This document shows, piece after piece, positions 44,649 to 64,000 of a stretch of 64,000 nt of DNA. Both the position numbers and the translations under genes were made by a program. Numbering within the stretch: the stretch's first letter is position 1; every line of letters begins with the position of its first letter. The notes below the pieces were generated by a model that had not been told where the DNA came from, did no database searches, and was given only the letters and a program-made list of their open reading frames with translations. Source of the DNA: Basidiobolus meristosporus CBS 931.73. Taxonomy: Eukaryota; Fungi; Basidiobolomycota. The stretch lies in assembly GCA_002104905.1 (NCBI GenBank), contig MCFE01000161.1:85348-149347 (forward strand), read 5' to 3'.

Positions 44649-46719
44649 TCAGTTGTACCGCAATTGCCAATTGTATTGACCTATACAAGTCCCTATACCC
44701 AACACTAACACTAAGCCCAACCCCCACTCAAAAAGTAACTCCATTAAAATCCACCACTCAATAAGTATTTCTGTTGTAACACTCTGTTTCCACAACTTTG
44801 GCAGGAACCCTAAGGTATTATGCTGTTGATCATTTACTGGCTCTGATACATCCTGGTCTTCAGCCAGCACTGAAAGGTCTAGCTCCTCAACTGCCAGTCT
44901 TTGCAATAAGTCCTCCCAATATTCAAGTGCATTTGTTTGAGCATTGCTCTTGAAGAAGTGCTGCAACCTCTTGGTGTGCCTATTAATGCTCCAAAATTCC
45001 ACCAAAGGCATTGTGATTACCTTTTGAGTTCTTGACATCTTTACTCTGTCTGTCAGTGGTATATCCACTCTGTTAAGAGCTGCAGCTTTTTTCTTACACT
45101 TCCCTGTCTCTGGCTTGGGTAGACTTTTTCCCCATTACCTTTTCCTTTATCACTGCCAGGTCTTTCACTGCTACTTTGTCTGAGTACTTCCTGCATTGAA
45201 CTGCAATTTCTCCTTGATATATGTGGCTCTGATACATCTGTTTTGGCCCGCTTGTTCCTTGCTGGCACTCTGCAGGCTACCTGATGCTTCTGTCCTGCAT
45301 GCTTCAATCTCTCAGCCCATGCTGTGTGGGCTCCTGAGGTAGCTGCTCATTTTCATAACTGTCAAACCCTTCACTGCTACCTTGACTGAGTGCTTCTTGA
45401 GTAGAACTATCTTTTTCCTTGGTAAATGTTGTGCTGGTGCATTTGTGTATGCCTGCTTTCCCTTATTGGCACTCTTCCAGCTACCTGGTGCCTCTTTGAT
45501 GCTTGTTTGAAGCTTTTGGCCTGGCTTGTAATGGGCACTTGAGAAAGCTGCTGGCTTTTAGCCATTGCACCCTTGTTCTTCTGCCTTTGATAATTTCTGC
45601 TATTCTTGAGTTACTTTCTTAGCATACCAATGCTAGCCCAACATCTGTTTGCTTACTTGAATCAAGGATAATGCTCATGGAGCAAGTCAAGGGCATTCTG
45701 CTTGGCCTTGAGTTCCTGATGGTCCCATGGTATGCCAGCCTTGAAGTGTTGGTGTGCTAGACTTCTAACAGACTATTGAATATTATTTGTTTCACCCATT
45801 GTGTTAGAGAAAATCCATTTTTTGACCTTTTTTTTAGGTCAATGTTGTACAGGATGTGTAACAGCACAGAAGAACTGTAGACATGCATCAGGTACTCAAT
45901 GCCCATGGCACTCCAAATCTAGCTCCTGTGGCTTGTAACATGTCACAAAAATGCATGGCACTATCTTGGTCCACTGGTACTATCTGGCACTATATTTGAT
46001 TATTAGCCCTAAAGTAAGATCAACAGAAAGCACTTATAGTGCCAGATAGTACCAGTGGACCAAGATAGTGCCATGCATTTTTGTGACATATTACAAGCCA
46101 CAGGAGCTAGATTCTGAGTGCCATGGGTATTGAGTATCAGATGCATGTCTTCAATCCTTTTGTGCTCTTACACATCCTGCACAACATTGATCCACAAAAA
46201 AACATCAAAAAACGGATTTTCTCCTGCATCATAGGTGAAACACAGGGGCTACTTTGCATTTGATTGCTCTACACCTTTTGAATGCTCATCCCATTTTTGG
46301 ACTACTTCCTTATTTGTCTGGGCCATTACATCTATCCTATTGGCTACTGCACCTAGTTGCCACATTGATACTTCAGTATGAGCTGACAACATACTTGATA
46401 ATACAAGTGGTGGTGATGTTATGCCAGCCACTTGCAGATCTTCAACTGAAAGTACTACTTTTGCTACATTCTCATCTGCCTCAGTAATATGGTCAGCTTG
46501 CGGCTCTGTAGAGATTCCCAATTGACTACTTCACTGAGAGCCTGAGGAGTCCACATTATTACCTTCAGTGGGCACATTGTCCACAGGGCCTTTGTTGGAT
46601 GTAGCCCTGCTTGTTGCACTGAATGTCAAAGCAAGCAGTTGTCCAACTGTTCTTCTGCTGCTGTCAGTGGTGGAGTTTGGTTGGGAACCATGCAACTTTG
46701 CTTTATTTTTTGGCAGCAT
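44649..46719 (-). mobile_element. Accessory ORF of CACTA-like element B (pseudogenised, interrupted by foldback)
   Basis: Fragments 46531-46719 and 46249-46521 are homologous to the + strand ORF 59332-59739. The coding sequence continues beyond the foldback as basic, low-complexity fragments (45053-45780, 44649-45068). It lies head-to-head with the Tnp2 gene. Confidence 0.6.
45788..46248. repeat. Foldback/MITE-like inverted repeat: ~207-bp arms, 40-bp spacer
   Basis: 45788-45994 is the reverse complement of 46035-46242. The inner ~75 bp are near-identical and the outer part is more diverged. Confidence 0.92.
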
Positions 46720-46849
46720 ATATATGTAAGTGAGTCAAACCAAAGGTGAAATAGTGTTACATATATGTGTGTATGTGGTGCCAAAACTTTATTTAAAATG
46801 CTTACTATGGCAGATCATCATTGAATCTTACATTCATGTAGGTGCAGTG

Positions 46850-47404
46850 ACTCAAATACAAGACTGTCTTATATTCACATAGGTTTTGACAAAAAAAGCT
46901 ATATAATAGTGTTAGGTTACTGAGTGTCAAGCTGTTTGCCTGCTGGACAAGATTACTTGGATATAATACCGTTAGAGAAGAGAAAAAAGACCATGCAGCT
47001 ATTGTAACAAGCCTTTCAGCCATGAAGCATGCAGGCAGCATAGTAAGTATCAAAAGGATCATGGCCAGTGTTTTGCCACCCAGTTCATATGTAACCATTC
47101 ACCAGTCACTACTGTACCAACAATATCTTGCCAGCCACTTGATACCTCTATATCTGGCTGTACTGGTCACCTTGCACAAACTGAGTCAGGATAGTTTGTG
47201 ATGCCTTTAGGCTCACCCCAGCCTTCTGAATATTGCATGCAGAGTGATAGCTCTGAAGGATCAGGCTCACTGATGGATTGTGAGTGTATCTTCCCTAACA
47301 ACAGTACCCTGCACAAGCCTGGCAAAATCCCATTATGAGCCTATCTCCCTTAACAACAGTACCACACCTGAGCCTGGTCAAATCTCAATATGCAATAAGA
47401 TAAT
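46850..47404 (+). mobile_element. CACTA-like element B, transposase 5' part (continues at 50808)
   Basis: Inverted homolog of 58838-59100 (REKRPC..C Cys/His-rich N-terminus). Removing the PHIS insertion and one AAT restores the frame I-C-N-K-I-I-P-F-E across 47404/50811. Confidence 0.75.
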
Positions 47405-48147
47405 AGACTTGTTCCATCGTACCGTGCGAGGGCGCGCGGCGCAATCCGCGGTCGCAAAGAACAATTGGGCGTGATATTATGGCTACCAGAAGACAGGATT
47501 GTTCTTGGACGATTTCGCACTATGCGGGGCGATCTCGCACACTATGGCACAATCTGACACGATGAGGTTGGCACGGATGATTGCGCCAACTCGTAATGTT
47601 TGCATCACGTGCGCGATTGGATACCGCTATAATGGCAGGTAAAATCCGGTATTTGGATATGTTTCTTTAATGTAAATGGAAATAAATGTGTATCACACTA
47701 TAAACTATACTGATACTTACCATTTTGGTTACCCTCACTCCAATTGGACGGTATCTCAGTGGTTAATTGGTCCAAAAGTATCCTGAAGCTGGCATCCCCC
47801 AATTGGCTCATTGACTACTAAAAAAGCTACCTGATTTGCCAACAAATATCCCATTTTGCCCATTGAGCAAGTAAATCCCTGATCCTAGTGATTGGGCAAG
47901 GTGTCATAGCTAGCACGCAAGCGATTGTGTAGGTGCGGAACAGATCCAATTGCTGCACTAGTATTACAGATGACGTATATATATGCAGGGTGTTTATTTA
48001 TAGGGGTTCTGTCTCAAATGTGAGACGACCTTGATATTACTTATATCAAAAATTTGATGATCACTGATTTGCGATGGCTCAATTCGGATCGCAAAAAAAA
48101 AGGGTTGTCGGGATCATTACGAATGTGAGCGATTCAAAGCAATCGCA

Positions 48148-49380
48148 TCATCTTCTCCTGGGTTTTTTTCTCACAGGGATTACTACTGAAGCATTTGGTA
48201 GTGACTCACTTTGCACACCTATACTACTTCCAGGCTGACTATCATCTTGGCTACTTGTGTATTTGTAGTCAGTATTTTGCCTCCTAGTTGATGACTGCGA
48301 TGCTGCAGCTTGGCCGTGCTGAATCGCTCCGACTGAACTAACTGAACCGGCCTGTAGTGCCACGCGCTGACGCGTTCTTTTACTTGCCAAGGGCTCTGGT
48401 GGTTGAGGCACTTCATGTTGGTCATCATCAGTCAGTTCACCAGAAGTAACTCGCTGATGGTCGGGCAAAACGGCACGCACAGGCGCGCCTTGACGCGTTG
48501 AGATGGCCCTTGGCTGAGTTCAATGGGATGCCGCATGTTGACGTGACTTGGTCCGCTCCAATGGACTCGTGTCTAAATGAGCAGTTTGGCGAGTTCTCGT
48601 AGTTTTGCTCTGAAGCGCGCGCGTCGACTCGACGCGGGGCGTTTTGGTAAAGGGTGTTGGCGTGGTCTGGACTGACGTGCGCCGGTGCGCTGTGGTTGCA
48701 AGAGATGGTAGGGAATCCAGCGAGGCGTGCTGGCGCGATCTAGACAATGTTGCCCGTGGTCTGTATTCTTCCTCCTGAAGCTCACCATCTGATTCCTCAA
48801 GGTATTCACTTACCCTCTGTCTGATACTTTGGAGCTGTTGCCTGGATGAGTCCTGTGTATATTGCTCTCGGAAGCCACTTAGCTCTACTAATATATCACA
48901 TAGTACATTAGTCACTTGAGGCAAAAACTCATTCAAAATCTCATTGGTTCCCAAAGTTGAGGCACAAACGGACGCGTCCGGCCCGTACTGTGCAAATTGC
49001 GCGCGAAATTGTTCCCGCGTGGCTTCTTCGTCAAATCCCCTCACTCTCAGCTCATTCTTGATTTCAATACTTGTCTTTTTATATATCTTTTTACATACAT
49101 CGGCTGGCATCTTGATGTAGAACTCATGCCACAGCTTTCTACTCAAATTCTTCCATCTTTGTCAACTCTCTGAGGTATCTAGTTCTGCTAGATTAATCAG
49201 TAGTGCCCAAATATCTGTATGAAGGCTCATCATAGACACTTGAGCCATACTAAAATCATTTGGCGAGAACTCGAACGGATCCAACATCGACTTTTCCGGT
49301 CCAAACCGCGCTTGTGAGCTGGGGGATGGGTTTTGTCTGGGTTGTACTAAAGATGAGTTGAGGCTTGGTATGGGGACCAT
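48148..49380 (-). pseudogene. Partner ORF (ORF2) of PHIS copy 1, about 410 codons, two premature TGA
   Basis: Track ORFs 49162-49380, 48520-49146 and 48148-48480 are in one frame, separated by single TGA codons that are CGG or CAA in copy 2. C-terminal NLS-like RKKPRRR. Confidence 0.85.
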
Positions 49381-49739
49381 AGCAACGGATTTGGATACTT
49401 ATACAGCAGTATATTGGCATCAACCTGGTCTTATATGAAATATATATGAAAACTAATGTGATTGTTGAATTTTCCATATATTATGCATGATGCATCTCGG
49501 ATTGCGTTGACACGGATCAGATCACATTAATTGCAGATTTCCTATTTGATTATAGAACTATGATTAAAGCATCAATAAAAGTACCAAGGCATTGTTTGCG
49601 GATGATTTTTGCGACATAATGATGGGATACATGGCAATTGATGGAGATTTAACCATAATGTGTTAAAAATCAGATAAATAAGGCGGATCGCGCTGAATCG
49701 ATTCAAACCACCTTTATACGATCATCTATCAATTTTAAT

Positions 49740-50624
49740 ATGACTTACTCATCTGAATGGTCTTTTCTCATCAATCCCATCACTACCACTGGATTTCCTT
49801 TTGACACACTGGAGGAGATCTATACCAAGTACTGTGGACCATCAACCCCAATCTACTCAAGGAGATCCCTTGTTAAGCTTCTCTGCTATTACAAGAACTA
49901 TTGCCCTACAAGGTTTCATCCCACCATCCATGGCAACAAAAGTCCTAGAAGCTTTCATTCCCAGCTGACAGCAATGGAGAACCACCTTGCAGAGGGTATG
50001 AATGACTTAGAGCAAGCTTGGAATACTAGGTTCAGAAGCTCCAATAGACTTCCATATCCCAGAGTGTTCAGCAACAGGTTCCATATCAGGAGTATTTTGG
50101 ATACCTTCCCAGTGAGGATTAACAGACCTTCTAGAGGGCAGAGGCACTTTTATTCTGGCAAGTACAAGGCACACTGTGTGAAGTTTCAAGCACTGTCTGA
50201 CATTGAGGGCAACATCATCTGGTTTAGTGGGCCATTTGCTGGAAGTAGGCATGACAAAGCACTCTGGGTAGAGAATCATCCTGAATTCAGTAGAGGGGAG
50301 AAATGTATGGCAGACTTAGCCTATATAGGAGAGGATTGTCAGAGATTAGGATGTATTACAGCTTATAGGAAGCCAAGGAATGGTGTGCTTAGCAGGAAGC
50401 AGAAGCTCTACAATGAGATATTTAATCATTTCAGAGTGAGGGTAGAGCACACATTTGGATATCTGAAGAGATTCAGCATATTGGCAGGTAAATACAGAGG
50501 AAAGTCATATATAGGTGAAAACAGCAGGATAGGTAAAATAGTTAAGATACTTATTAATGCACAGTATGTTCATACAAGAAGACATCCACTGAGAGAAATG
50601 TGTCTGGAGCATTATGAAGAGTAA
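49740..50624 (+). CDS. DDE transposase (DDE_Tnp_4, PIF/Harbinger-IS5 type), 294 aa, intact
   Basis: ILDTFPVRINRP (D1); YSGKYKAHCVKFQ; SGPFAGSRHD; MADLAYIG (D2); RVRVEHTFGYLKRFSIL (E). Confidence 0.93.
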   Translation: MTYSSEWSFLINPITTTGFPFDTLEEIYTKYCGPSTPIYSRRSLVKLLCYYKNYCPTRFHPTIHGNKSPRSFHSQLTAMENHLAEGMNDLEQAWNTRFRSSNRLPYPRVFSNRFHIRSILDTFPVRINRPSRGQRHFYSGKYKAHCVKFQALSDIEGNIIWFSGPFAGSRHDKALWVENHPEFSRGEKCMADLAYIGEDCQRLGCITAYRKPRNGVLSRKQKLYNEIFNHFRVRVEHTFGYLKRFSILAGKYRGKSYIGENSRIGKIVKILINAQYVHTRRHPLREMCLEHYEE

Positions 50625-50807
50625 ATAAAGCAAGGAAAGCACTATTCTGAGCAACATAAGTAAGATTGAGTAAAATTACCAGTAACTGTATCATACCACT
50701 GGCATCGTGGTAGAAATTATAGTGCCAGATAGTGCCGTAGAGTGCCAGATCAATCCGGCACTATAAACAGGCTGGCACTATGTGGCACTATCCAACGGAA
50801 CAAGTCT

Positions 50808-51692
50808 AATACCCTTTGAAACAAATGCCAAGGATAATTCATGGAGTCAAGTGAGCCCAGTAATCTATCTACTGGTGAATAATATGATGTTGTTGCTAGA
50901 GAAGTGCTGCCTTTCCAATAATATCAGTAATGGGGGCTTTGAGGATTTACTACTACTTCTTACCAAAATCATCCTGAGATGCAACTTAACATGTATATGG
51001 TATAAATGGAAAACCATCATGCAGCTGCCAACATGTGACCCAGAGACCATCCTGATACCAGCATGTGTTAACAGTTGCATGGCATTCACATCAGAAAGTA
51101 CCACCATTGCAGGTGTCCAACTTATCAGGAATCCACCACTATTGGGGGAAAACATTGTTCACACTCAAGATATTCTGGTAATACCCTTTATAAAGAAGCT
51201 CATTCAGTTCTATAAATATTGTGAAGCTACAGAGTACTGCACTCAGTGTCAATTGAGCTCAAACATTTCCAACATGCCTTTGCCTTGGCACATGATGGAT
51301 TTACATTAGACAAGTACTATACCAGCAAATCCTGCTGGTGACTGAGTCTCATCAATCTGGATCTGCCACCTATCTTAGAGTATCAGAGTGATAATCTGAT
51401 GGTAGTCTCACTGGTATCTGGGCCTATATCACTGTCCAACCTGGGTGGCTACCTATCTCCATTGCTGGATGAATTTTGTATGCTTTTCAGCAGGATAACA
51501 GTCAATGGCTGCCATATCAAAGTGCATATTATTATCCGTGTTGGAGATACCCCAGCCATTAGCAAGATAGCAGGTTTTCTGGGCACAATGGATGGTATTG
51601 CTGGAAAGTTACCTGTAACCATTGCCAGATGAATTTTGTATGCTTTCCAGCAGGATAGCAGTAAATGGCCATCATCAAAAGTGCACACTATT
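50808..51692 (+). mobile_element. CACTA-like element B, transposase middle part, with a ~160-bp tandem duplication
   Basis: ACVNSCMAF; NLMVVSLVSGP..LSNLGGYLSPLLDEF; IIRVGDTPAISKIAG. The segment from ~51460 is repeated from ~51619. Confidence 0.85.
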
Positions 51693-52740
51693 AGACTTTT
51701 CTTTTGGATAATGCCAAATAGAGCCAGCTTGTTTATAGTGCCAGATTGATCTGGCACTCTATGGCACCATTGGGACTCTAACTTCTACCATTATGCCAGT
51801 GGTTTGATACAGTTACTGGCATTATTACTCAATCTTACTTATGTTGCTCAGAACAGTGCTTTTCTTGCTTTATTTACTCTTCATATTGCTCCAGACACAT
51901 TTATCTCAGTTGATGCCATCTTGTATAAATATGCTGTGCATTAATAAGTATCTTGACTATTTCATCTATTCTGCTGTTATCTCCTATATATAAGTTTCCT
52001 CTGTATTTACCTGCTAATATGCTGAATCTCATTAGATATCCAAATGTATGCTTTACTCTCACTATGAAATGATTAAATTTCTCAGTGTAGACCTTCTGCT
52101 TCCTGCTAAGCACTCCTTTCCTGGGCTTCCTATGAGCTGTATTACATCCTAATCTCTGGCAATCCTCTCCTATAAAAGCCAAGTCTGCCATACATCTCTC
52201 CCCTTAACTGAGTTCTGGAAGATTCTCTGCCCAGGGTGCTTTGTCATGCCTACTTCCAGCAGATGGAACACTAAACCTGATGATGTTACCCTCAATGCTA
52301 GACAGTGCTTGAGACCTCACACAGTGCGCCTTGCATTTGCCAGAATAAATGTACCTCTGCCCTCCAGAAGGTCTATTGAGCCAGGCTGGGAAGGTATCCA
52401 AAATATTCCTGATATGCCACCTGTTGCTGAACACTCAGGGAAATGGAAGTTTACTGGAGCTTCTGAACCTACTATTCCATGCTTGCTCTAAGTCACTCAG
52501 ATGCATCATACATAATATATGGAAAATTCAACATTCATATTAGTTTTCATATGTATTTCATATAAGACCAGGTTAATGCCAATATACTACTGTATAATTA
52601 TCCAAATCTGCCACTATGGTCCCTATAGTAAGCCTCAGCACATCTTTAGTACAACCCAGACAAAACCCATCCCCCTGCTCACAAGCATGGTCTGGATCAG
52701 CAAAGTCAATGTTAGATCTGTTCAAGTTCTTGCCAAATGC
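51693..52740 (-). mobile_element. PHIS copy 4: truncated, diverged, internally deleted
   Basis: Degenerate right TIR agacttttcttttggat preceded by ATT (51690-51692); transposase 3' half as ORFs 51901-52191 and 52204-52434; ~0.5-kb deletion near 52497; ORF2 5' region to ~52740; left end missing. Confidence 0.85.
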
Positions 52741-52759
52741 TTTTACGCTTTGAAAATAA

Positions 52760-55422
52760 TTTGGTCCTGCAGGAGGATCCAATCCAGATCAGCTGTCATG
52801 ATCCTGTTCAGAGACCATCATAATACCAGCAGCTTGGAATTAGTGACCCTCTTAACAATCTTATGATGGGATCATGATGGTATTTACTAATTTGCAACCA
52901 AATAAAGGGATATAACTTGACAATATTTTATTGGTGCTGTGTTGATATTTGCATGGTATTGTTGCAGTCTTTTAGTGCTGTATAACTATTTTAAGTGGAT
53001 CCAGTTTGCCAGGACATCCAATTGCCTTATATGGCAAGAAACTTGACAGTATTTTGACAGCCTCACAGCAAGACTCTGATGGCATTATATTGGCAATATG
53101 ATGGCCTACAGCTGGTGCAGTATAATGCAACCATACTAATTTACCAAATGGTATTTCCTTTTTCTACCTCCTCTTGTGCAATTCATATATTCCACTGCAG
53201 AATCACCCCTCTTTATTTGCTTACCCACTACTACCTTGGGTATTCCACATATAGTTTGAATCAAAAGTAACTATGAACACTTGCTCACTGACCTCTACAA
53301 ACACACATATCTGCCACAGTTGGCATACTTCTATAAACTTAACATTATGGCTTTTTAGTATGATACTTGCAAAGTTGCTATATACCTTGTACTGCTGGTA
53401 ACATATACATCTTGCAAACATATGCTTAGTTGTTGCCACCTCTGCCATGAATACCTCCTGAATATCTGCAAAGAACTTCTTGGTATTTAGCCAATATATT
53501 AGTTCTCCCTGCTGGATTCTAGTCCCCCTTATAGGTACAATCTGGCTTTTGTTTGTGTGACTTCCATATTGAATGGTGTAGAAGTTGGCTTGTGACAATG
53601 CGAAATCTGTCATATATTGGTAGAGTTCTTCTCATAAGAATTAGTTGCTAGTTGAGCCCAACCCAACTTTGCATTACTTAGCTGATTACCCACCTGTTGG
53701 GGCTGCTTAGCTTCTTAATGCCATAGGCATAGGTGTCTCCATGCGCACATTTGTTCTCAGTATTTTCCAGCTCTTTCTGGCTGTCCTCCATGTGCCAACT
53801 CATCACATCCATGATGGAATTGAAGGTTAGATTCTTGATGAGATTGGGATATGGTAGTACCTACAACTTGAGTTGTCTTCCTATCTCCCCACACATCTGC
53901 TCCATAGGAAACTCCCAAAAGGTGAAGCAAGGCCCAACATCTCCACACACCATGCAAGATGGAGTTGAGAATGGATACATAGCAGCAGAGATCTATGCAT
54001 TCAGCTTTATGTGTGTAGTATGGCTGCTCAAATCCTTTCACAAACTCCTCACACAACAGTTTTAGATGTGTCAAGTTGGTATTGGTGATCCACTTCTGGA
54101 TAAATATTCTTACAATGTCCACATATGACTCCCAATGCTTCCAATGAACTCTTGATAGGAATGGCTTCAGAATGCCACTTGAATAAATACATATCCAGTT
54201 CATCCAGTCATTGCATTTGTATTGTTGCATATGAGTATAAATATTAATTGCAGCCTGTGAGAAGTACTTAGGGTAGTAGATACTTTGTAATATCTTCCCA
54301 ATTCTTTCAGATTACTCTGGTATCTCAAAGAGCTCATTTAGCTTGAAATGCCCCATGTACAACTTAGTCATCAGTATGGGGATATTGTTGAAATGCAAAT
54401 GCATTGCTCCCAGTGGAAAGCTTTTGCTCCAAAAGATACCCCCTATCTTAAGTATCTTCAGTTTCCAATTAATTCCATATTCCAGCCAATGGCTTATACA
54501 TTGCCAACTTTCATGCAATGGCATGCTGACGTCTGTACGTTCTCTCTATGGAAAGTTGATGTTCTTAGTGCTGATGTTTGGGTAATAATAATGTGTGTGA
54601 GTTATGGAGCAAATCCCCTGGATCTCACGCATTCAACAGCAATACCATCCATTGTGCCTGGAAAACCTGCTATCTTACTGATGGCTGGGGTATCTCCAAC
54701 ACATATAATAATATGCACTTTGACATGGCAGCCATTGACTGTTATCGTGCTGAAAAGCATACAAAATTCATCCAGCAATGGAGACAGGTAGCCACCCAGG
54801 TTGGACAGTGATATAGGCCCAGATACCAGTGAGACTACCATCATATTATTGCACTTATACCATAAGATGGGCAGCAGATTCAGATTGATGAGAATCAGTG
54901 GCCAGCAGGATTTGCTGGTAGAGTACTTGATCAATGAGAATTCATCAAGTGCCAAAGCAAAGGCATGGTCATAAATACCTTCAAAGTAGCCCTTGCTTCT
55001 TAGCTGTTTGTAAGATTTGCCATCAAATATATCCAATATGTTTGTGCTTGATTGATACTAAGTGCAGTACTGTATAGCTTTGCAATATTTGTCAGACTGC
55101 ATCAGCTTCCTCAGACAGGATATGACCGGAATATATCTGGAGTGTGAATAATGTTTTCCCTTAATGGTAGTGGATTCCTGACAATTTGGACACATTGCAA
55201 TGGTAGCATTTTTGGATGTGAATGCCATGCAACTGTTGACACATGCTGGAATCAGGACAGTCTCTGGATCATATGTTGCCAGCCGCATGACAGTTGTCCA
55301 CTTGTACCATGTACATGGTAAGTTGCATCCCAGAATGATTTTGGCAAGAAGTAGTAATAAATCCATGGTGATAAAGATGGCCAGGTGCCAATATTGATGT
55401 ACCAACTGGCCGGCAAGATAAT
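52760..55422 (-). mobile_element. CACTA-like element C, transposase body (pseudogenised)
   Basis: DIFDGKSYKQL...ALALDEFSL...SCWPLILINLNL...VSLVSGP...LSPLLDEF...VGDTPAISKIAG; WMNW...YSSGILKPFL..HWKHW; C-terminal domain 53221-53613. Confidence 0.88.
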
Positions 55423-56096
55423 AGACTTGTTCCATCGTACTGTGCCAGGGCGTGCGGCACAATCCGTGGTTGTAAAGAACGATTGGGTGTGATATTATAG
55501 CTACCAGAAGGAAGGATTGTTCTTGGACAATTTTGCACTATGCGGGACGATCTCGCACACTATGGCACAATCTGACACAATGAGGTTGGAATGGATGATT
55601 GCGCCAACTCGTAATGTTTGCATCACGTGCGCAATTGGATACCGCTATTATGGCAGGTAAAATCCGGTATTTGGATATGTTTCTTTAATGCAAATGGAAA
55701 TAAATGTGTATCACACTATAAACTACACTAATACTTACCATTTTGGTTACCCTCACTCCAATTGGACGGTATCTCAGTGGTTAATTGGTCCAAAAGTATC
55801 CTGAGGCTGGCAGCCCCCAATTGGCTCATTGACTACTAAAAAAGCTACCTGATTTGCCATCAAATATCCCATTTTGCTCATTGAGCAAGTAAATCCCTGG
55901 TCCTAGTGATTGGACAAGGTGACATAGCCAGCACGCGAGCGATTGTGTAGGTGTGAAACAGATCCAATAGCTGCACTGGTATTACAGATGACGTATATAT
56001 ATGCAGGGTGTTTATTTATAGGGGTTCTGTCTCAAATGTGAGACAACCTTGATATTACTTATATCAAAAATTTGATGATCACTGATTTGCGACGGC

Positions 56097-57411
56097 TCAA
56101 TCCTGATCGCAAAAAAAAAGGGTTGTTGGGATCATTACGAATGTGAGCGATTCAAAGCGATTGTATCGTCTTCTCCTGGGTTTTTTTCTCACAGGGATTA
56201 CTACTGAAGCATTTGGTAGTGACTCACTTTGCACACCTATACTACTTCCTGGCTGACTATCATCTTGGCTACTTGTGTATTTGTAGTCAGTATTTTGCCT
56301 CCTAGTTGATGAGTGCAATGCTACAGCTTGGCCGCGCTGAATTGCTCCAACTGAACCAACTGAACCGGCCTGTAGTGCCACGTGCTGACGCGTTCTTTTA
56401 CTTGCTAAGGGCTCCAGTGGTTGAGGCACTTCATGTTGGTCATCATCAGTCAGTTCACCAGAAGTAACTTGCTGATGGTCAGGCAAAACGGCACGCGCAG
56501 GCGCGCCTTGACGCGTTGAGATGGCCCTTGGCTGAGTTTGATGTGATGCTGCAAGTTGACGTGACTCGGTCCGCTCCAATGGACTTGTGTCTAAATGAGC
56601 AGTTTGGCAAGTTCTCGTAGTTTTGCTCTGAAGCACGCGTTGACCCAACGCGCGTTGACTCAAGGCGGGGCGTTCCGGTAAAGGGTGTTGGCATACTCTG
56701 GACTGACGTGCTCCGGCGCGCTGTGGTTGCAAGAGATGGTAGGGAATCCAGCAAGGCGTGCTGGCGCGATCTGGATGATGTTGCTCGCGGTCTGTATTCT
56801 TCCTCCTGAAGCTCACCATCTGATTCCTCAAGGTATTCACTTACCCTCTGTCTGATACTTTGGAGCTATTGCCTGGATGAGTCCTGTGTATATTGCTCTT
56901 GGAAGCCACTTAGCTCTACTAATATATCACGTAGTACATTAGTCATTTGAGGCAAAAACTCATTCAAAATCTCTTTGGTTCCCAAAGTTGAGGCACAAAT
57001 GGACATGTCCGGCCTGTACTGTACAAATTGCCCGCAAAATTGCTCCCGCACGGCTTCTTTGTCAAATCCCCTCACTCTCAGCTCATTCTTGATTTCAATA
57101 CTTGTCTTGTTATATATCTTTTTACATACATTGGCTGGCATCTTGATGTAGAACTCATGCCACAGCTTTCTACTCAAATTCTTGCATCTTTGCCGACTCT
57201 CTGAGGTGTCTAGTTCTGCTAGATTAATCAGTAGTGCCCAAATATCTGTATGAAGGCTCATCATAGACACTTGGGCCATACTAAAATCATTTGGCGAGAA
57301 TTTGAGCGGATCCGACATTGACTTTTCCGGTCTGGACCGCACTTGTGAGCTGGGGGATGGGTTTTGTCTGGGTTGTACTAAAGATGAATTGAGGCTTGGT
57401 ATGGGGACCAT
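56097..57411 (-). pseudogene. Partner ORF2 of PHIS copy 2 (stop and frameshift)
   Basis: Homologous to 48148-49380; stop at 56866 and a frameshift at the expanded 15-nt unit near 56640. Confidence 0.85.
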
Positions 57412-57769
57412 AGCAACGGATTTGGATACTTATACAGCAGTATATTGACATCAACCTGGTCTTATATGAAATATATATGAAAACTAATGTCATTGTTGAA
57501 TTTTCTATATATTATGCATGATGCATCTTGGATTGCGTTGACACAGATCAGATCACATCAATTGCAGATTTCCTATTTGATTATAGACTTATGATTAAAG
57601 CATCAATAAAAGTATCAAGGCATTGTTTGCGGATGATTTTTGCAACATAATGATGGGATACGTGGCAATTGATGGAGATTTAACCATAATGTATTAAAAA
57701 TCAGATAAATAAGGCGGATTGCGCCAAATCAATTCAAACCGCCTTAAACAATCATCCACCAATTTTAAT

Positions 57770-58654
57770 ATGACTTACTCATCTGAATGGTCTTTTCTCA
57801 TCAATCCCATCACTACCACTGGATTTCCTTTTGACACACTAGAGGAGATCTACTCCAAGTACTGTGGACCATTAACCCCAATCTACTCAAGAAGATCCCT
57901 TGTTAAGCTTCTCTGCTATTACAAGAACTATTGCCCTACAAGGTTTCATCCCACCATCCATGGCAACAAAAGTCCTAGAAGCTTTCATTCCCAGCTGACA
58001 GCAATGGAGAACCACCTTGCAGAGGGTATGAATGACTTAGAGCAAGCTTGGAATACTAGGTTCAGAAGCTCCAATAGACTTCCATATCTCAGAGTGTTCA
58101 GCAGCAGGTTCCATATCAGGAGTATTTTGGATACCTTCCCAGTGATGATTAACAGACCTTCTAGAGGGCAGAAGCACTTTTATTCTGGCAAGTACAAGGC
58201 ACGCTGTGTGAAGTTTCAAGCACTGTCTGACATTGAGGGTAACATCATCTGGTTCAGTGGGCCATTTGCTGGAAGTAGGCATGACAAAGCACTCTGGGTA
58301 GAGAATCATCCTGAATTCAGTAGAGGGGAGAAATGTATGGCAGACTTAGCTTATATAGGAGAGGATTGTCAGAGATTAGGATGTATTACAGCTTATAGGA
58401 AGCCAAGGAATGGTGTACTTAGCAGGAAGCAGAAGCTCTACAATGAGATATTTAATCATTTCAGAGTGAGGGTAGAGCACACATTTGGATATCTGAAGAG
58501 ATTCAGCATATTGGCAGGTAAATACAGAGGAAAGTCATATATAGGAGAAAACAGCAGAATAGGTAAAATAGTTAAGATATGTATTTATGCACAGTATGTT
58601 CATACAAGAAGACATCCACTGAGAGAAATGTGTCTGGAGCATTATGAAGAGTAA
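57770..58654 (+). CDS. DDE_Tnp_4 transposase of copy 2, 294 aa, intact
   Basis: Near-identical to 49740-50624 (about 10 substitutions by eye); DDE motifs retained. Confidence 0.93.
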   Translation: MTYSSEWSFLINPITTTGFPFDTLEEIYSKYCGPLTPIYSRRSLVKLLCYYKNYCPTRFHPTIHGNKSPRSFHSQLTAMENHLAEGMNDLEQAWNTRFRSSNRLPYLRVFSSRFHIRSILDTFPVMINRPSRGQKHFYSGKYKARCVKFQALSDIEGNIIWFSGPFAGSRHDKALWVENHPEFSRGEKCMADLAYIGEDCQRLGCITAYRKPRNGVLSRKQKLYNEIFNHFRVRVEHTFGYLKRFSILAGKYRGKSYIGENSRIGKIVKICIYAQYVHTRRHPLREMCLEHYEE

Positions 58655-58837
58655 ATAAAGCAAGGAAAGCACTATTCTGAGCAACATAAGTAAGATTGAG
58701 TAAAATTACCAGTAGCTGTATCATACCACAGGCATCATGGTAGAAATTATAGTGCCAGATAGTGCCGTAGAGTGCCAGATCAATCTGGCACCATAAACAG
58801 GCTGGCACTATGTGGCACTATCCAACGGAACAAGTCT

Positions 58838-59723
58838 AATGTTGGTACAGTAGTGACCAATGAATAGTCAAATAAGACTTGGGTGGCAAAACACTGGCCA
58901 TGATCCTTATAATACTTCCTATGCTGTCTGCATGCATCATGGCTGAGAGGCTTGCCACAATAGCCACATGGTCTTTTTTCTCTTCTCTCACAGCATTGAG
59001 TCAAAGTAGTCTTGTCCATGGGGTAAACAGTTTGACCTTCAACAATACAATGCTATTATATCACTTCTTGCTCAATACTCATGTGAAACTAAGACAGTTT
59101 TGTATTTGAGACATTGCACCTACATAAATGTAAGATTCAATGATGACCAGCCATAGTAAGCATTATAAATAAAGTTGTGGCACCACATACACACATACAT
59201 GAAACACTATTTCCCCTTTGGTTTGACTCACTTCCATATATATACCGCCAAAAGATGAAGCAAAGTCATCTAGTTCCCAACTAAACCCCACTGCTGATGG
59301 CAACAGAAGAACAGATGGACAACAGCTTGCTTTGACATTGAGTGCAACATGCAGGGCTATATCCAATAAAGGCCACATTGACCATGTGCCCACTGAAGGT
59401 ATTAATGCAGACTCCTCAGGCTCTCAGTCAAGTAGGCAATTGAGAACCTTGGTGGAGCCACAAGCTGACCATTATTCTCAGGCAGATACAAATGTAGCAA
59501 AAGTAGTACCCACAGTTGAAGACCAGCAAGTGGCCATGTTAACATCACCACCACCTATATTGGCAAGTATGTTGTCAGCTCATACCAAAGCATTAATGAA
59601 GCCATTAGGTGCAGTAGTTGATAGGATAGATGCAATGGCCCAGAGAAATCAGGAAATAGTCCAGAAACAGGATGAGCGGATAATATATGTAGAGCAATCA
59701 ATATTCCAGGTTGAGGAAGCAAT
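58838..59723. mobile_element. CACTA-like element C central part: transposase 5' end (minus) and accessory ORF 5' end (plus; resumes after 63964)
   Basis: Inverted homolog of 46249-47140. Minus strand ERREKRPCGYCGKPLSHDACRQH; plus ORF 59332 onward reads on as EEAISLLQRRNSSRS once PHIS copy 3 is removed. Confidence 0.8.
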
Positions 59724-59906
59724 AGACTTGTTCTGTTGAATAGTGCCACATAGTGCCAGCCTGTTTATAGTGCCAGATTGATCTGGCACTCTATGGCACT
59801 ATCTGGCACTATAATTTCTACCATGATGCCAGTGTTATGATACAGGTACTGGTAATTTTACTCAATCCTACTTATGTTGCTCAGAATAGTGCTTTCCTTG
59901 CTTTAT

Positions 59907-60791
59907 TTACTCTTCATAATGCTCCAGACACATTTCTCTCAGTGGATGTCTTCTTGTATGAACATACTGTGCATAAATACATATCTTAACTATTTTACCT
60001 ATTCTGCTGTTTTCTCCTATATATGACTTTCCTCTGTATTTACCTGCCAATATGCTGAATCTCTTCAGATATCCAAATGTGTGCTCTACCCTCACTCTGA
60101 AATGATTAAATATCTCATTGTAGAGCTTCTGCTTCCTGCTAAGCACACCATTCCTTGGCTTCCTATAAGCTGTAATACATCCTAATCTCTGACAATCCTC
60201 TCCTATATAGGCAAAGTCTGCCATACATTTCCCCCCTCTACTGAATTCAGGATGATTCTCTACCCAGAGTGCTTTGTCATGCCTACTTCCAGCAAATGGC
60301 CCACTGAACCAGATGATGTTACCCTCAATGTCAGACAGTGCTTGAAACTTCACACAGCGTGCCTTGTACTTGCCAGAATAAAAGTGCTTCTGCCCTCTAG
60401 AAGGTCTGTTAATCCTCACTGGGAAGGTATCCAAAATACTCCTGATATGGAACCTGCTGCTGAACACTCTGAGATATGGAAGTCTATTGGAGCTTCTGAA
60501 CCTAGTATTCCAAGCTTGCTCTAAGTCATTCACACCCTCTGCAAGGTGGTTCTCCATTGCTGTCAGCTGGGAATGAAAGCTTCTAGGACTTTTGTTGCCA
60601 TGGATGGTGAGATGAAACCTTGTAGGGCAATAGTTCTTGTAATAGCAGAGAAGCTTAACAAGGGATCTTCTTGAGTAGATTGGGGTTGATGGTCCACAGT
60701 ACTTGGAGTAGATCTCCTCTAGTGTGTCAAAAGGAAATCCAGTGGTAGTGATGGGATTGATGAGAAAAGACCATTCAGATGAGTAAGTCAT
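59907..60791 (-). CDS. DDE_Tnp_4 transposase of copy 3, 294 aa, intact
   Basis: Near-identical to copies 1 and 2; shares the ARC and CIY variants with copy 2. Confidence 0.93.
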   Translation of the reverse strand: MTYSSEWSFLINPITTTGFPFDTLEEIYSKYCGPSTPIYSRRSLVKLLCYYKNYCPTRFHLTIHGNKSPRSFHSQLTAMENHLAEGVNDLEQAWNTRFRSSNRLPYLRVFSSRFHIRSILDTFPVRINRPSRGQKHFYSGKYKARCVKFQALSDIEGNIIWFSGPFAGSRHDKALWVENHPEFSRGGKCMADFAYIGEDCQRLGCITAYRKPRNGVLSRKQKLYNEIFNHFRVRVEHTFGYLKRFSILAGKYRGKSYIGENSRIGKIVKICIYAQYVHTRRHPLREMCLEHYEE

Positions 60792-61150
60792 ATTAAAATT
60801 GGTGGATGATTGTATGGAGGCGGTTTAAATTGATTTGGCATGATCTGCGTTATTTATCTGATTTTTAATACATTATGGTTAAGTCTCCATCAATTGCCAT
60901 GTATCCCATCATTATGCTGCAAAAATCATCCGCAAACAATGCCTTGGTACTTTTATTGATGCTTTAATCATAGGTCTATAATCAAATAGGAGATCTGTGA
61001 TTGATGTGATCTGATCTGTGTCAACGCAATCCAAGATGCATCATGCATAATATATGGAAAATTCAACAATCACATTAGTTTTCATATATATTTCATATAA
61101 GACCAGGTTGATGCCAATAGACTGCTGTATAAGTATCCAAATTTGTTGCT

Positions 61151-62412
61151 ATGGTCCCCATACCAAGCCTCAATTCATCTTTAGTACAACCCAGACAAAA
61201 CCCATCACCCAGCTCATAAGCACGGCCAGGACCGGAAAAGTCAATGTTAGATCCATTTGAGTTCTTGCCAAATGATTTCAGTATGGCCCAAGTGTCTATG
61301 ATGAGCCTTCATACAGATATTTGGACACTACTGATTAATCCAGCAGAACTAGACACCTCAGAGAGTTGACAAAGATGGAAGAATTTGAGTAGAAAGCTGT
61401 GGCATGAGTTCTACATCAAGATGCCAGCCAATGTATGTAAAAAGATATATAAAAAGACAAGTATCAAAATCAAGAATGAGCTGAGAGTGAGGGGATTTGA
61501 CAAAGAAGCCGCACGGGAACAATTTTGCCCACAATTTGCACAGTACAGGCTGGACGCGTCCATTTGTGCCTCAACTTTGGGAACCAAAGAGATTTTGAAT
61601 GAGTTTTTGCCTCAAATGACTAATGTACTACGTGATATATTAGTAGAGCTAAGTGGCTTCCAAGAGCAATATACACAGGACTCATCCAGGCAACAGCTCC
61701 AAAGTATCAGACAGAGGGTAAGTGAATACCTTGAGGAATCAGATGGTGAGCTTCAGGAGGAAGAATACAGACCGCAAGCAACATTGTCCAGATTGCGCCT
61801 GCACACCTTGCTGGATTCCCTACCATCTCTTGCAACCACAGCGCGCCAGCGCACATCAGTCCAGACCACGCCAACACCCTTTACCAAAGTGCCCACATCA
61901 AGTCAACACGCATTGAGTCAATGTGCATTGGGTCAACATGTGCGCTTCAGAGCAAAACTACAAGAACTTGCCAAACTGCTCATTTAGACATGAGTCCAGT
62001 GGAGCAGACCAAGTTGTGTCAACATGCAGCATCACATTGAACTCAGCCAAGGGCCATTTCAATGCGTCAAGGCGCTCCTGCACATGCCATTTTGCCTGAC
62101 CATCAGCAAGTTACTTCTGGTGAACTGACTGATGATGACCAACATGAAGTGCCTCAACCACTGGAGCCCTTAGCAAGTAAAAGAACGCGTCAGCACGTGG
62201 CACTACAGGCTGGTTCAGTTGGTTCAGTTGGAGCAATTCAGCGTGGCCAAGCTGCAGCTTCACACTCATCAACTAGGAGGCAAAATACTGACTACAAATA
62301 CACCAGTAGCCAAGATGATAGTCAGCCAGGAAGTAGTATAGGTGTGCAAAGTGAGTCACTACCAAATGCTTCAGTAGTAATCCCTGTGAGAAAAAATCCC
62401 AGGAGAAGATAA
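61151..62412 (+). pseudogene. Partner ORF2 of PHIS copy 3 (stops and frameshift)
   Basis: Homologous to the ORF2 of copies 1 and 2; TGA at 61367-61369 and 62038-62040. Confidence 0.85.
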
Positions 62413-63035
62413 TGCAATTGCTTTGAATTGCTCATATTTGTAATGATCCCAACAATTCATTTTTTTTGCAATCCAAATTGAGCCATTGCAAATCAGTGAT
62501 CATCAAATTTTTGATATAAGTAATATCAAGGTCATCTCACATTTGAGACAGAACCCCTATAAACCAACACCCTGCATATATTTACGTCATCTGAAATACC
62601 AGTGCAGCTATTGGATCTGTTTTGCACCTACACAATTGCTTGCATGCTAGCTATGACACCTTGTCCAATCACCAGGGTCAGGGATTTACTTGCTCAATGG
62701 GCAAAATGGGATATTTGATGGCAAATCAGGTAGCTTTTATAGTAGTCAATGAGCCAATTGGGGGCTGCCAGCTTCAGGATACTTTGGACCAATTAACCAC
62801 TGCGATAATGTCCAATTGGAGTGAGGGTAACCAAAATGGTAAGTATAAGTGTAGTTTATAGTGTGATACACATTTATTTCCATTTACATTAAAGAAACAT
62901 ATCCAAATACTGGATTTTACCTGCCATAATAGCGGTATCCAATTGCACACATGATGCAAACATTACAAGTTGGTGCAATCATCCGTGCCAACCTCATTGT
63001 GTCAGATTGCGCCATAGTGTGCAAGATTGTCCCGC

Positions 63036-63838
63036 TGTGGTGGTGTAGAGGTACTCCTGGGAGAAGCTACACAACTCAAGGTGTGTGAGGAGTCTGATGG
63101 GTGCAATAACCTCTGTGTCTAAACTGCTGGTGTCTTTGTCAATATGCCACTATGGTAAAAGCTCCTGCTTCTCTAGCTTCCTAGGTGCTCCAAGTGTCTC
63201 CAAAGGCCTCTGTGTGTCTTGTGCACTACCCTGAAAAGCTCCTTGATTGCAGGTCTGAGATGTACTGTTGAAGGCAGGTGCAGTGATCAATTGCTAATCA
63301 ATAAGGTTGAAGTGTTACTGATAGAAGGGATGATTTATTGATGAGGGATTGCTTTCCCTTAAATACTTTTCCTGATTGCCAAGTGATTACTAATGACAAG
63401 GTTCTAGAAGATTCTAGGTATCAGTGGAATTCTTGATGACATCACTATGAGCTAAAAATATGCCAAGAATGTCCTGGAAGGTTCTAAAAGGCATAGCACT
63501 TTTGACCAATCAGGATCAGTAGTCTGAAACCTGTGCAACATAGAAATACCATATATGGTATTGAAATGGTAGGGATGGTAACACAGACCTAGGTCATGGG
63601 TCACAGGTACTGACGCGGGCACTTGCCTTATATAGATACATCTAATGATCACAAAGCTGAATAACATCTGGGATAACTAATGCTAATAACTAATCAGGGT
63701 AAACATCATATGGGGATAACACTGATAATATGGGCAAAAGAAGAATGGGATAATACTGATAAGATGAAATATGGATAAGTATATCATGATGACTATATGA
63801 GTAAACTTGTCTGTGGGAGGTATGCTTACCCTACCACA
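63036..63838 (-). mobile_element. Solo LTR, 803 bp
   Basis: TGTGGT...ACCACA termini; 4-bp TSD CCGC at 63032-63035 and 63839-63842; absent at the equivalent site in copies 1 and 2; minus-strand TATATAA (63634-63628) and AATAAA (63339-63334) suggest orientation. Confidence 0.88.
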
Positions 63839-64000
63839 CCGCATAGTGCAAAATTGTCCAAGAACAATCCTGCCTTCTGGTAGCTATAATATTGCGCCTG
63901 ATTGTTCTTTACAACCGCGGATTGTGCCATGCGCCCTGGCATGGTACAATGGAACAAGTCTAAAATCTTTGCTGCAAAGAAGGAACTCAAGTAGATCAAT

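Follow-up and report, generated by a model that had tools for sequence, protein, structure and literature searches.

Introduction

The prevailing view is that DDE transposons of the cut-and-paste kind capture their targets through a two-fold symmetric complex, and their target logos are palindromic. The target of PIF is the 9-bp palindrome CWCTTAGWG. Within the PHIS superfamily (PIF/Harbinger-ISL2EU-Spy-Pangu-Nuwa), the Pangu group, reported in fungi, is characterized by a 3-bp ANT target site duplication (TSD), terminal inverted repeats (TIRs) of 11–40 bp that begin with AG or GG, a length of about 3.5 kb and a second open reading frame (ORF) without a known domain (Han et al. 2015, PMC4482050). 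The Pangu transposase is located next to bacterial IS5 in a tree of DDE domains, and NuwaII has an extended target, C|TNA|G, which reaches beyond the TSD and is palindromic (PMC4482050). Barley Helitrons use a target with AAA positioned 8 bp downstream of A-T (PMC5738225). Here we describe an element that fits the Pangu group in a 64,000-nucleotide window of the Basidiobolus meristosporus CBS 931.73 genome (assembly GCA_002104905.1, contig MCFE01000161.1, positions 85,348 to 149,347, forward strand; "the window" below refers to this whole stretch, numbered from its first letter). Each of its three full copies in the window is preceded on its left side by the pentamer AAGAT.

Results

AAGAT precedes the left target duplication of three independent insertions

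The final 21 kb of the window form a transposon island, in which self-BLAST and a TIR search located three full copies of one element and one fragment (Table 1). The TIR, AGACTTGTTCC, is 11 bp long and perfect in each full copy. In element orientation the left junctions read AAGAT-AAT-AGACTTGTTCC in copies 1 and 2 and AAGAT-TTT-AGACTTGTTCC in copy 3. The right junctions read AAGTCT-AAT-accct in copy 1, AAGTCT-AAT-gttgg in copy 2 and AAGTCT-ATT-gcttc in copy 3, and the right end of copy 4 is followed by AAT-agtgt. An earlier note on this DNA, made from the letters alone, had reported AAGAT before the left TSD of all three insertions and unconserved DNA beyond the right TSD, and the junction sequences agree with it on both counts and in the coordinates that it gave. 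The four right flanks are unlike each other and unlike ATCTT; those of the full copies match this mirror motif at 3/5, 1/5 and 1/5 positions. The fuller formula of the note, AAGAT + AWT at each left end, holds literally for copies 1 and 2 only, since the left TSD of copy 3 is TTT and ATT is found on its right side alone. The original target of copy 3 was presumably ATT, with one copy of the duplication having mutated since. The middle base of the TSD is A or T in every case seen. A 5-bp TSD (TANTA) was considered and rejected: it fits copy 1 only, and the invariant T and A belong to the element itself, as its last and first bases.

According to self-BLAST, the identity shared by the copies extends exactly 8 nt outside the left end of the element and 3 nt outside its right end, and the flanks further out are unrelated, in agreement with the claim that the insertions are independent and occupy non-homologous sites. 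Judged by these flanks, segmental duplication can be regarded as excluded for the three insertions, the sequences past the 8 nt being non-homologous. The left flanks were also evaluated as relics of older right ends, given the resemblance of AAGAT to AAGTCT. This candidate was rejected: alignment scores were within the null distribution (p=0.09-0.99), and similarity of the left flanks to the family's own right end was no higher than that of random AWT-site flanks.

Table 1. Coordinates of the element copies, their junctions and neighboring features in the window
Feature	Position	Strand	Remarks
Copy 1, full element	47405-50807	+	TIR AGACTTGTTCC at both ends
Copy 2, full element	55423-58837	+	TIR search, self-BLAST
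Copy 3, inverted full element	59724-63961	-	interrupted by ~800-bp foreign insert, 63036-63838
Copy 4, older right-end fragment	51693-52745	-	internal deletion; left end missing
Copy 1 transposase ORF, 294 aa, DDE_Tnp_4	49740-50624	+	Pfam match itself from the ORF of copy 2
Copy 2 transposase ORF, 294 aa from ATG, DDE_Tnp_4	57770-58654	+	E=2.6e-23
Copy 3 transposase ORF, 294 aa	59907-60791	-	intact
AAGAT 5' of copy 1 left TSD	47397-47401	+	host DNA
Copy 1 left TSD, AAT	47402-47404	+	right TSD AAT, 50808-50810
AAGAT 5' of copy 2 left TSD	55415-55419	+	host DNA
Copy 2 left TSD, AAT	55420-55422	+	right TSD AAT, 58838-58840
AAGAT 5' of copy 3 left TSD	63965-63969	-	ATCTT on + strand
Copy 3 left TSD, TTT in element orientation	63962-63964	-	mutated; right TSD ATT, 59721-59723
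Copy 4 right TSD, AAT (+ strand ATT)	51690-51692		flank agtgt
Empty paralog of copy 2 target, AAGAT-ATT	47122-47129	-	in host repeat copy A
Host repeat copy A	46260-47125	-	83% paralog of 58837-59701 (DNA between copies 2 and 3)
Transposase_21 (Tnp2, CACTA/KDZ-like) relic	54602-55036	-	in degenerate repeats; E=7.7e-12

AAGAT was host DNA before insertion

When the flanks of copy 2 are rejoined with a single AAT, they align colinearly across both flanks with 47030-47225(-), where a host repeat paralog of 83% identity is located. The reconstructed site, GGCCGGCAAGAT-AAT-GTTGG, is matched by GGCTGGCAAGAT-ATT-GTTGG in the alignment, and the paralog itself reads GGCAAGAT-ATT-GTTGG. The colinear empty paralog establishes that exactly 3 nt were duplicated at copy 2 and that AAGAT was there beforehand, the second point being one that the earlier note had drawn from the same paralog.

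For copy 1, reads from four public runs of the same strain, in the form of contigs, were compared with positions 47000-51200 (4201 letters). Strain contigs link position 47400 with 50807, with an ambiguity of 3-5 letters at the joint, and give AAGA-TAATA-CCC, as expected of an empty copy 1 site, with the small caveat that the letters between the joined ends of this main joint are not known. Variant paralogs at the copy 1 site read CAACAAGAC-AAT or GAGGCAGC. Because the empty sites of copies 1 and 2 both contain AAGAT, the pentamer is host DNA at these two insertions, and its description as target rather than element is borne out by the paralog of copy 2 and the contig joints of copy 1. An empty site for copy 3 was not found. 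The idea that copy 3 and a palindromic element (45788-46242) share one insertion site, each in its own host paralog, found no support: homology stops about 10 nt short of both boundaries, and no alignment extends into the far flanks.

The left flank of copy 1 (47290-47396) consists of a tandem duplication of about 52 bp within a host repeat. Other genomic paralogs of this flank carry a single unit of about 52 bp, as seen in a contig joint from 47337 to 50808.

An extended target and the question of its orientation

AAGAT is located upstream of 0.24% of the 4672 AWT sites in the window and 0.36% of those in its part rich in transposable elements (TEs). For three AWT sites drawn at random and oriented, the probability of a common upstream pentamer is 5e-7 when the whole window is sampled and 5e-6 when only its TE-rich part is. 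Chance is thus a poor explanation for these three insertions, even when the choice between two sides and among a few offsets is taken into account, and an extended target preference is plausible. An asymmetric preference that fixes the orientation of the element is suggested but unproven.

The three copies represent independent cut-and-paste insertions of a single Pangu-type PHIS transposon that is present in many copies in B. meristosporus. Each target carried AAGAT beforehand, beside the side that received the left end, which is proximal to ORF2, and at each a 3-bp A-W-T was duplicated. The integration complex may prefer the extended target AAGAT-AWT, and because the two ends of the element differ in their subterminal sequences, it would dock on this site in one orientation. 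We consider such a preference, oriented by non-equivalent ends, a tentative reading that falls somewhat short of probable. The more demanding proposition, that a eukaryotic DDE/TIR transposon reads a strong one-sided AAGAT beside a 3-bp target and has its orientation fixed on an 8-bp asymmetric site, we hold to be doubtful.

Several observations weigh against an oriented target. The sample is three insertions, all located in a single 17-kb TE island. Comparison of the left side (3/3) with the right side (0/4) gives only a one-sided p≈0.03 in Fisher's test, and under a half-site model all three motifs would fall on one side by chance with p=0.25. AAGAT-AWT occurs 14 times in the window, as compared with 8.2 expected; 12 of the 14 sites are unoccupied, including one 275 bp from copy 1, so AAGAT-AWT by itself is clearly not enough to bring about insertion. 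Among the best-supported loose ends listed for the strain contigs, the right end at 50808 is present and a strong pile-up at 47397 is absent. The left terminus of the element is CpG-rich and heavily decayed, with a contig depth about one third that of the right end, and the absence at 47397 is therefore uninformative either way. At the target, two-fold symmetry is the norm for DDE transpososomes. In a survey of barley repeats an asymmetric target was found for Helitrons only, and its authors were aware of no earlier case in any TE (PMC5738225).

The earlier note had proposed an asymmetric target of about 8 bp that fixes orientation. The agreement at the three sites goes far past chance, and to this extent the proposal stands; its orientation component rests on n=3 and is tempered by the half-site probability given above. 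Likewise, its wording that "every" insertion with an intact left end carries the motif describes 3/3 in the window, from a family with copies on the order of thousands.

The strongest competitor is that the family targets A-N-T only (perhaps T-ANT-A) and that the shared AAGAT is a rare chance event picked post hoc. The observation was drawn from a very large scan of about 250,000 windows, in which an event of ~1e-5 is expected somewhere, and many perfect AAGAT-AWT sites are unoccupied. The local probability calculated above argues against such a coincidence, as does the placement of the motif at offset 0 from the TSD with 5/5 positions perfect in 3/3 copies, and we judge it unlikely. Under a symmetric preference, the true target would be palindromic but degenerate (AAGAT-AWT-ATCTT, or T-ANT-A with its context), one good half-site would be enough, and the shared side would be accidental. 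Known extended targets of PHIS and PIF elements are palindromic (C|TNA|G of NuwaII in PMC4482050, and the 9-bp target of PIF), the target of copy 1, TAATA, is palindromic as well, and the half-site probability leaves room for an accidental side. However, the right flanks fit ATCTT poorly, as noted above, and the right-end contig consensus lacks a strong motif: contigs with a loose end at the right terminus, 34-40 in each run, read A|TT and then an AT-rich consensus whose agreement is only 0.41-0.42. There is no strong right-side motif genome-wide among these contigs. We regard a symmetric preference as distinctly unlikely.

A bias in retention rather than insertion appears very improbable. Insertion would then be unselective, and copies with their left end at AAGAT would excise poorly and so survive among old copies that have diverged by about 5%. 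The copies are indeed old, with pairwise identities of 92-95%, and an effect of context on cleavage could in principle be one-sided; however, no precedent was found, and the effect would need extreme strength to account for 3/3. Finally, that the 8 nt are part of the mobilized DNA, or that the copies arose by segmental duplication, is scarcely credible: copy 1 does have an AAT just upstream of AAGAT that is the same as its right TSD, but AAGAT is present in the empty sites of copies 1 and 2, copies 2 and 3 lack a matching TSD outside the 8-mer, and the flanks are non-homologous.

Structure and classification of the element

The element is 3403-3415 bp (about 3.4 kb) in length. Each full copy contains an intact 294-amino acid transposase ORF with a PF13359 (DDE_Tnp_4) domain, for which the ORF of copy 2 gave 82.8 bits against a cutoff of 24.8. 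ORF2, of about 410-440 codons, is divergent to the transposase ORF and is broken by frameshifts in all three copies. Its pieces contain no Pfam domain above cutoff, and no homolog was detectable in a homology search.

These properties agree with those described for Pangu. The TSDs are of the 3-bp ANT type (AAT/AAT, AAT/AAT, ATT with TTT on the other side, and AAT in copy 4), the 3-nt duplication being confirmed by the empty paralog; AGACTTGTTCC lies within the 11–40 bp range and starts with AG; the element is near 3.5 kb and has two ORFs, in the second of which no known domain is found; and the IS5-like DDE transposase with DDE_Tnp_4 is that of the PHIS superfamily. Classical PIF/Harbinger features were not found, the TSD being AAT/ATT and not TWA (TAA/TTA) and ORF2 having no Myb/SANT domain. 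On structural criteria, the element thus fits the Pangu group of the PHIS superfamily.

Two further features were observed within the copies. The insert of about 800 bp in copy 3 starts with TGTGG, ends with CCACA and is surrounded by an apparent 4-bp CCGC duplication. The insert resembles a solo long terminal repeat (LTR) placed at a CpG-containing site in the left subterminal region of the element. An internal TTGATTATAGACTT at 57577-57590 in copy 2 and 60972-60985 in copy 3 resembles a TSD followed by the start of the TIR and could be a cryptic internal end.

Abundance and relatives of the family

About 28,000 variant contigs were matched per large run of strain reads over 47000-51200; the family is extremely abundant, its copy number in the genome being of the order of thousands. 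Differences between copy 1 and other genomic copies are dominated by C>T and G>A, at about 110 places each, as compared with 45-50 for A>G and T>C and 5-13 for each transversion. This spectrum indicates strong decay of the deamination type in the element family.

No exact protein record of the transposase was found, nor did searches of protein collections yield any protein of this family. The one relative recovered is a 63%-identical transposase of 294 amino acids, encoded on a 1250-bp Logan contig of SRR949943 that ends before the TIR. Similar TAGTGCC subterminal repeats are present downstream of the transposase on this contig. The SRR949943 transposase represents a second, related Pangu-like family. 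A metagenome scan with the left end AGACTTGTTCCATYGTAC gave 15 loci, all of which were chance matches of 18-21 nt, and the gene-centered loci of B. meristosporus and B. ranarum (L017-L020) contained no copy of the element.

Other repeats of the island

An almost perfectly palindromic element of about 455 bp is located at 45788-46242, with 174-nt arms that are 90% identical and outer arms of 47 nt. Its center, TATAGTGCCAGATAGT(A/G)CC, is nearly identical to the right subterminal repeat of the Pangu element. It has neither AGACTTGTTCC ends nor a clear TSD and adjoins the end of host repeat copy A. Around the Pangu copies, the repeat arms (50812-51309 on the + strand, 55058-55414 on the - strand) contain adjacent ORF fragments without a Pfam domain and, as measured by contig depth, reach about the same level of repetition as the Pangu element itself.

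Discussion

An oriented preference for AAGAT-AWT would imply a functionally asymmetric transpososome, in which the left and right ends or ORF2 differ in target capture. Such an element would be a natural exception to symmetric capture and would point to end-specific roles in two-protein PHIS systems. It could also provide a starting point for orientation-defined, semi-targeted integration, although use as an integrase is speculation. Should the motif not hold up across the genome, the element would still represent a new, if ordinary, Pangu family in Basidiobolus.

Among DDE/TIR elements, a target motif on one side only would be new; extended palindromic PHIS targets are already known. In a brief search of the literature on asymmetric targets in Harbinger-type elements, nothing closer turned up than the systems compared here. 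Barley Helitrons have a one-sided target motif that is linked to element orientation, as is proposed for the present element. In contrast to the DDE cut-and-paste element described here, Helitrons transpose by a rolling-circle mechanism and have neither TIRs nor TSDs. PIF/Harbinger and NuwaII are alike in that their PHIS-superfamily transposases read bases past the duplicated triplet; their motifs are palindromic and orientation-neutral, with TWA or TNA as the TSD, whereas here the TSD is ANT and the motif is seen to one side of it only. The closest match is to the Pangu group, with which the element shares an ANT TSD confirmed by an empty site, a TIR starting with AG, a length of about 3.4-3.5 kb, and the pairing of a DDE-only transposase with a domain-less ORF. 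It differs from the published Pangu elements in its very high copy number, in its occurrence in an early-diverging fungus, and in its target, which is ANT alone in the published elements and here possibly includes an additional one-sided AAGAT.

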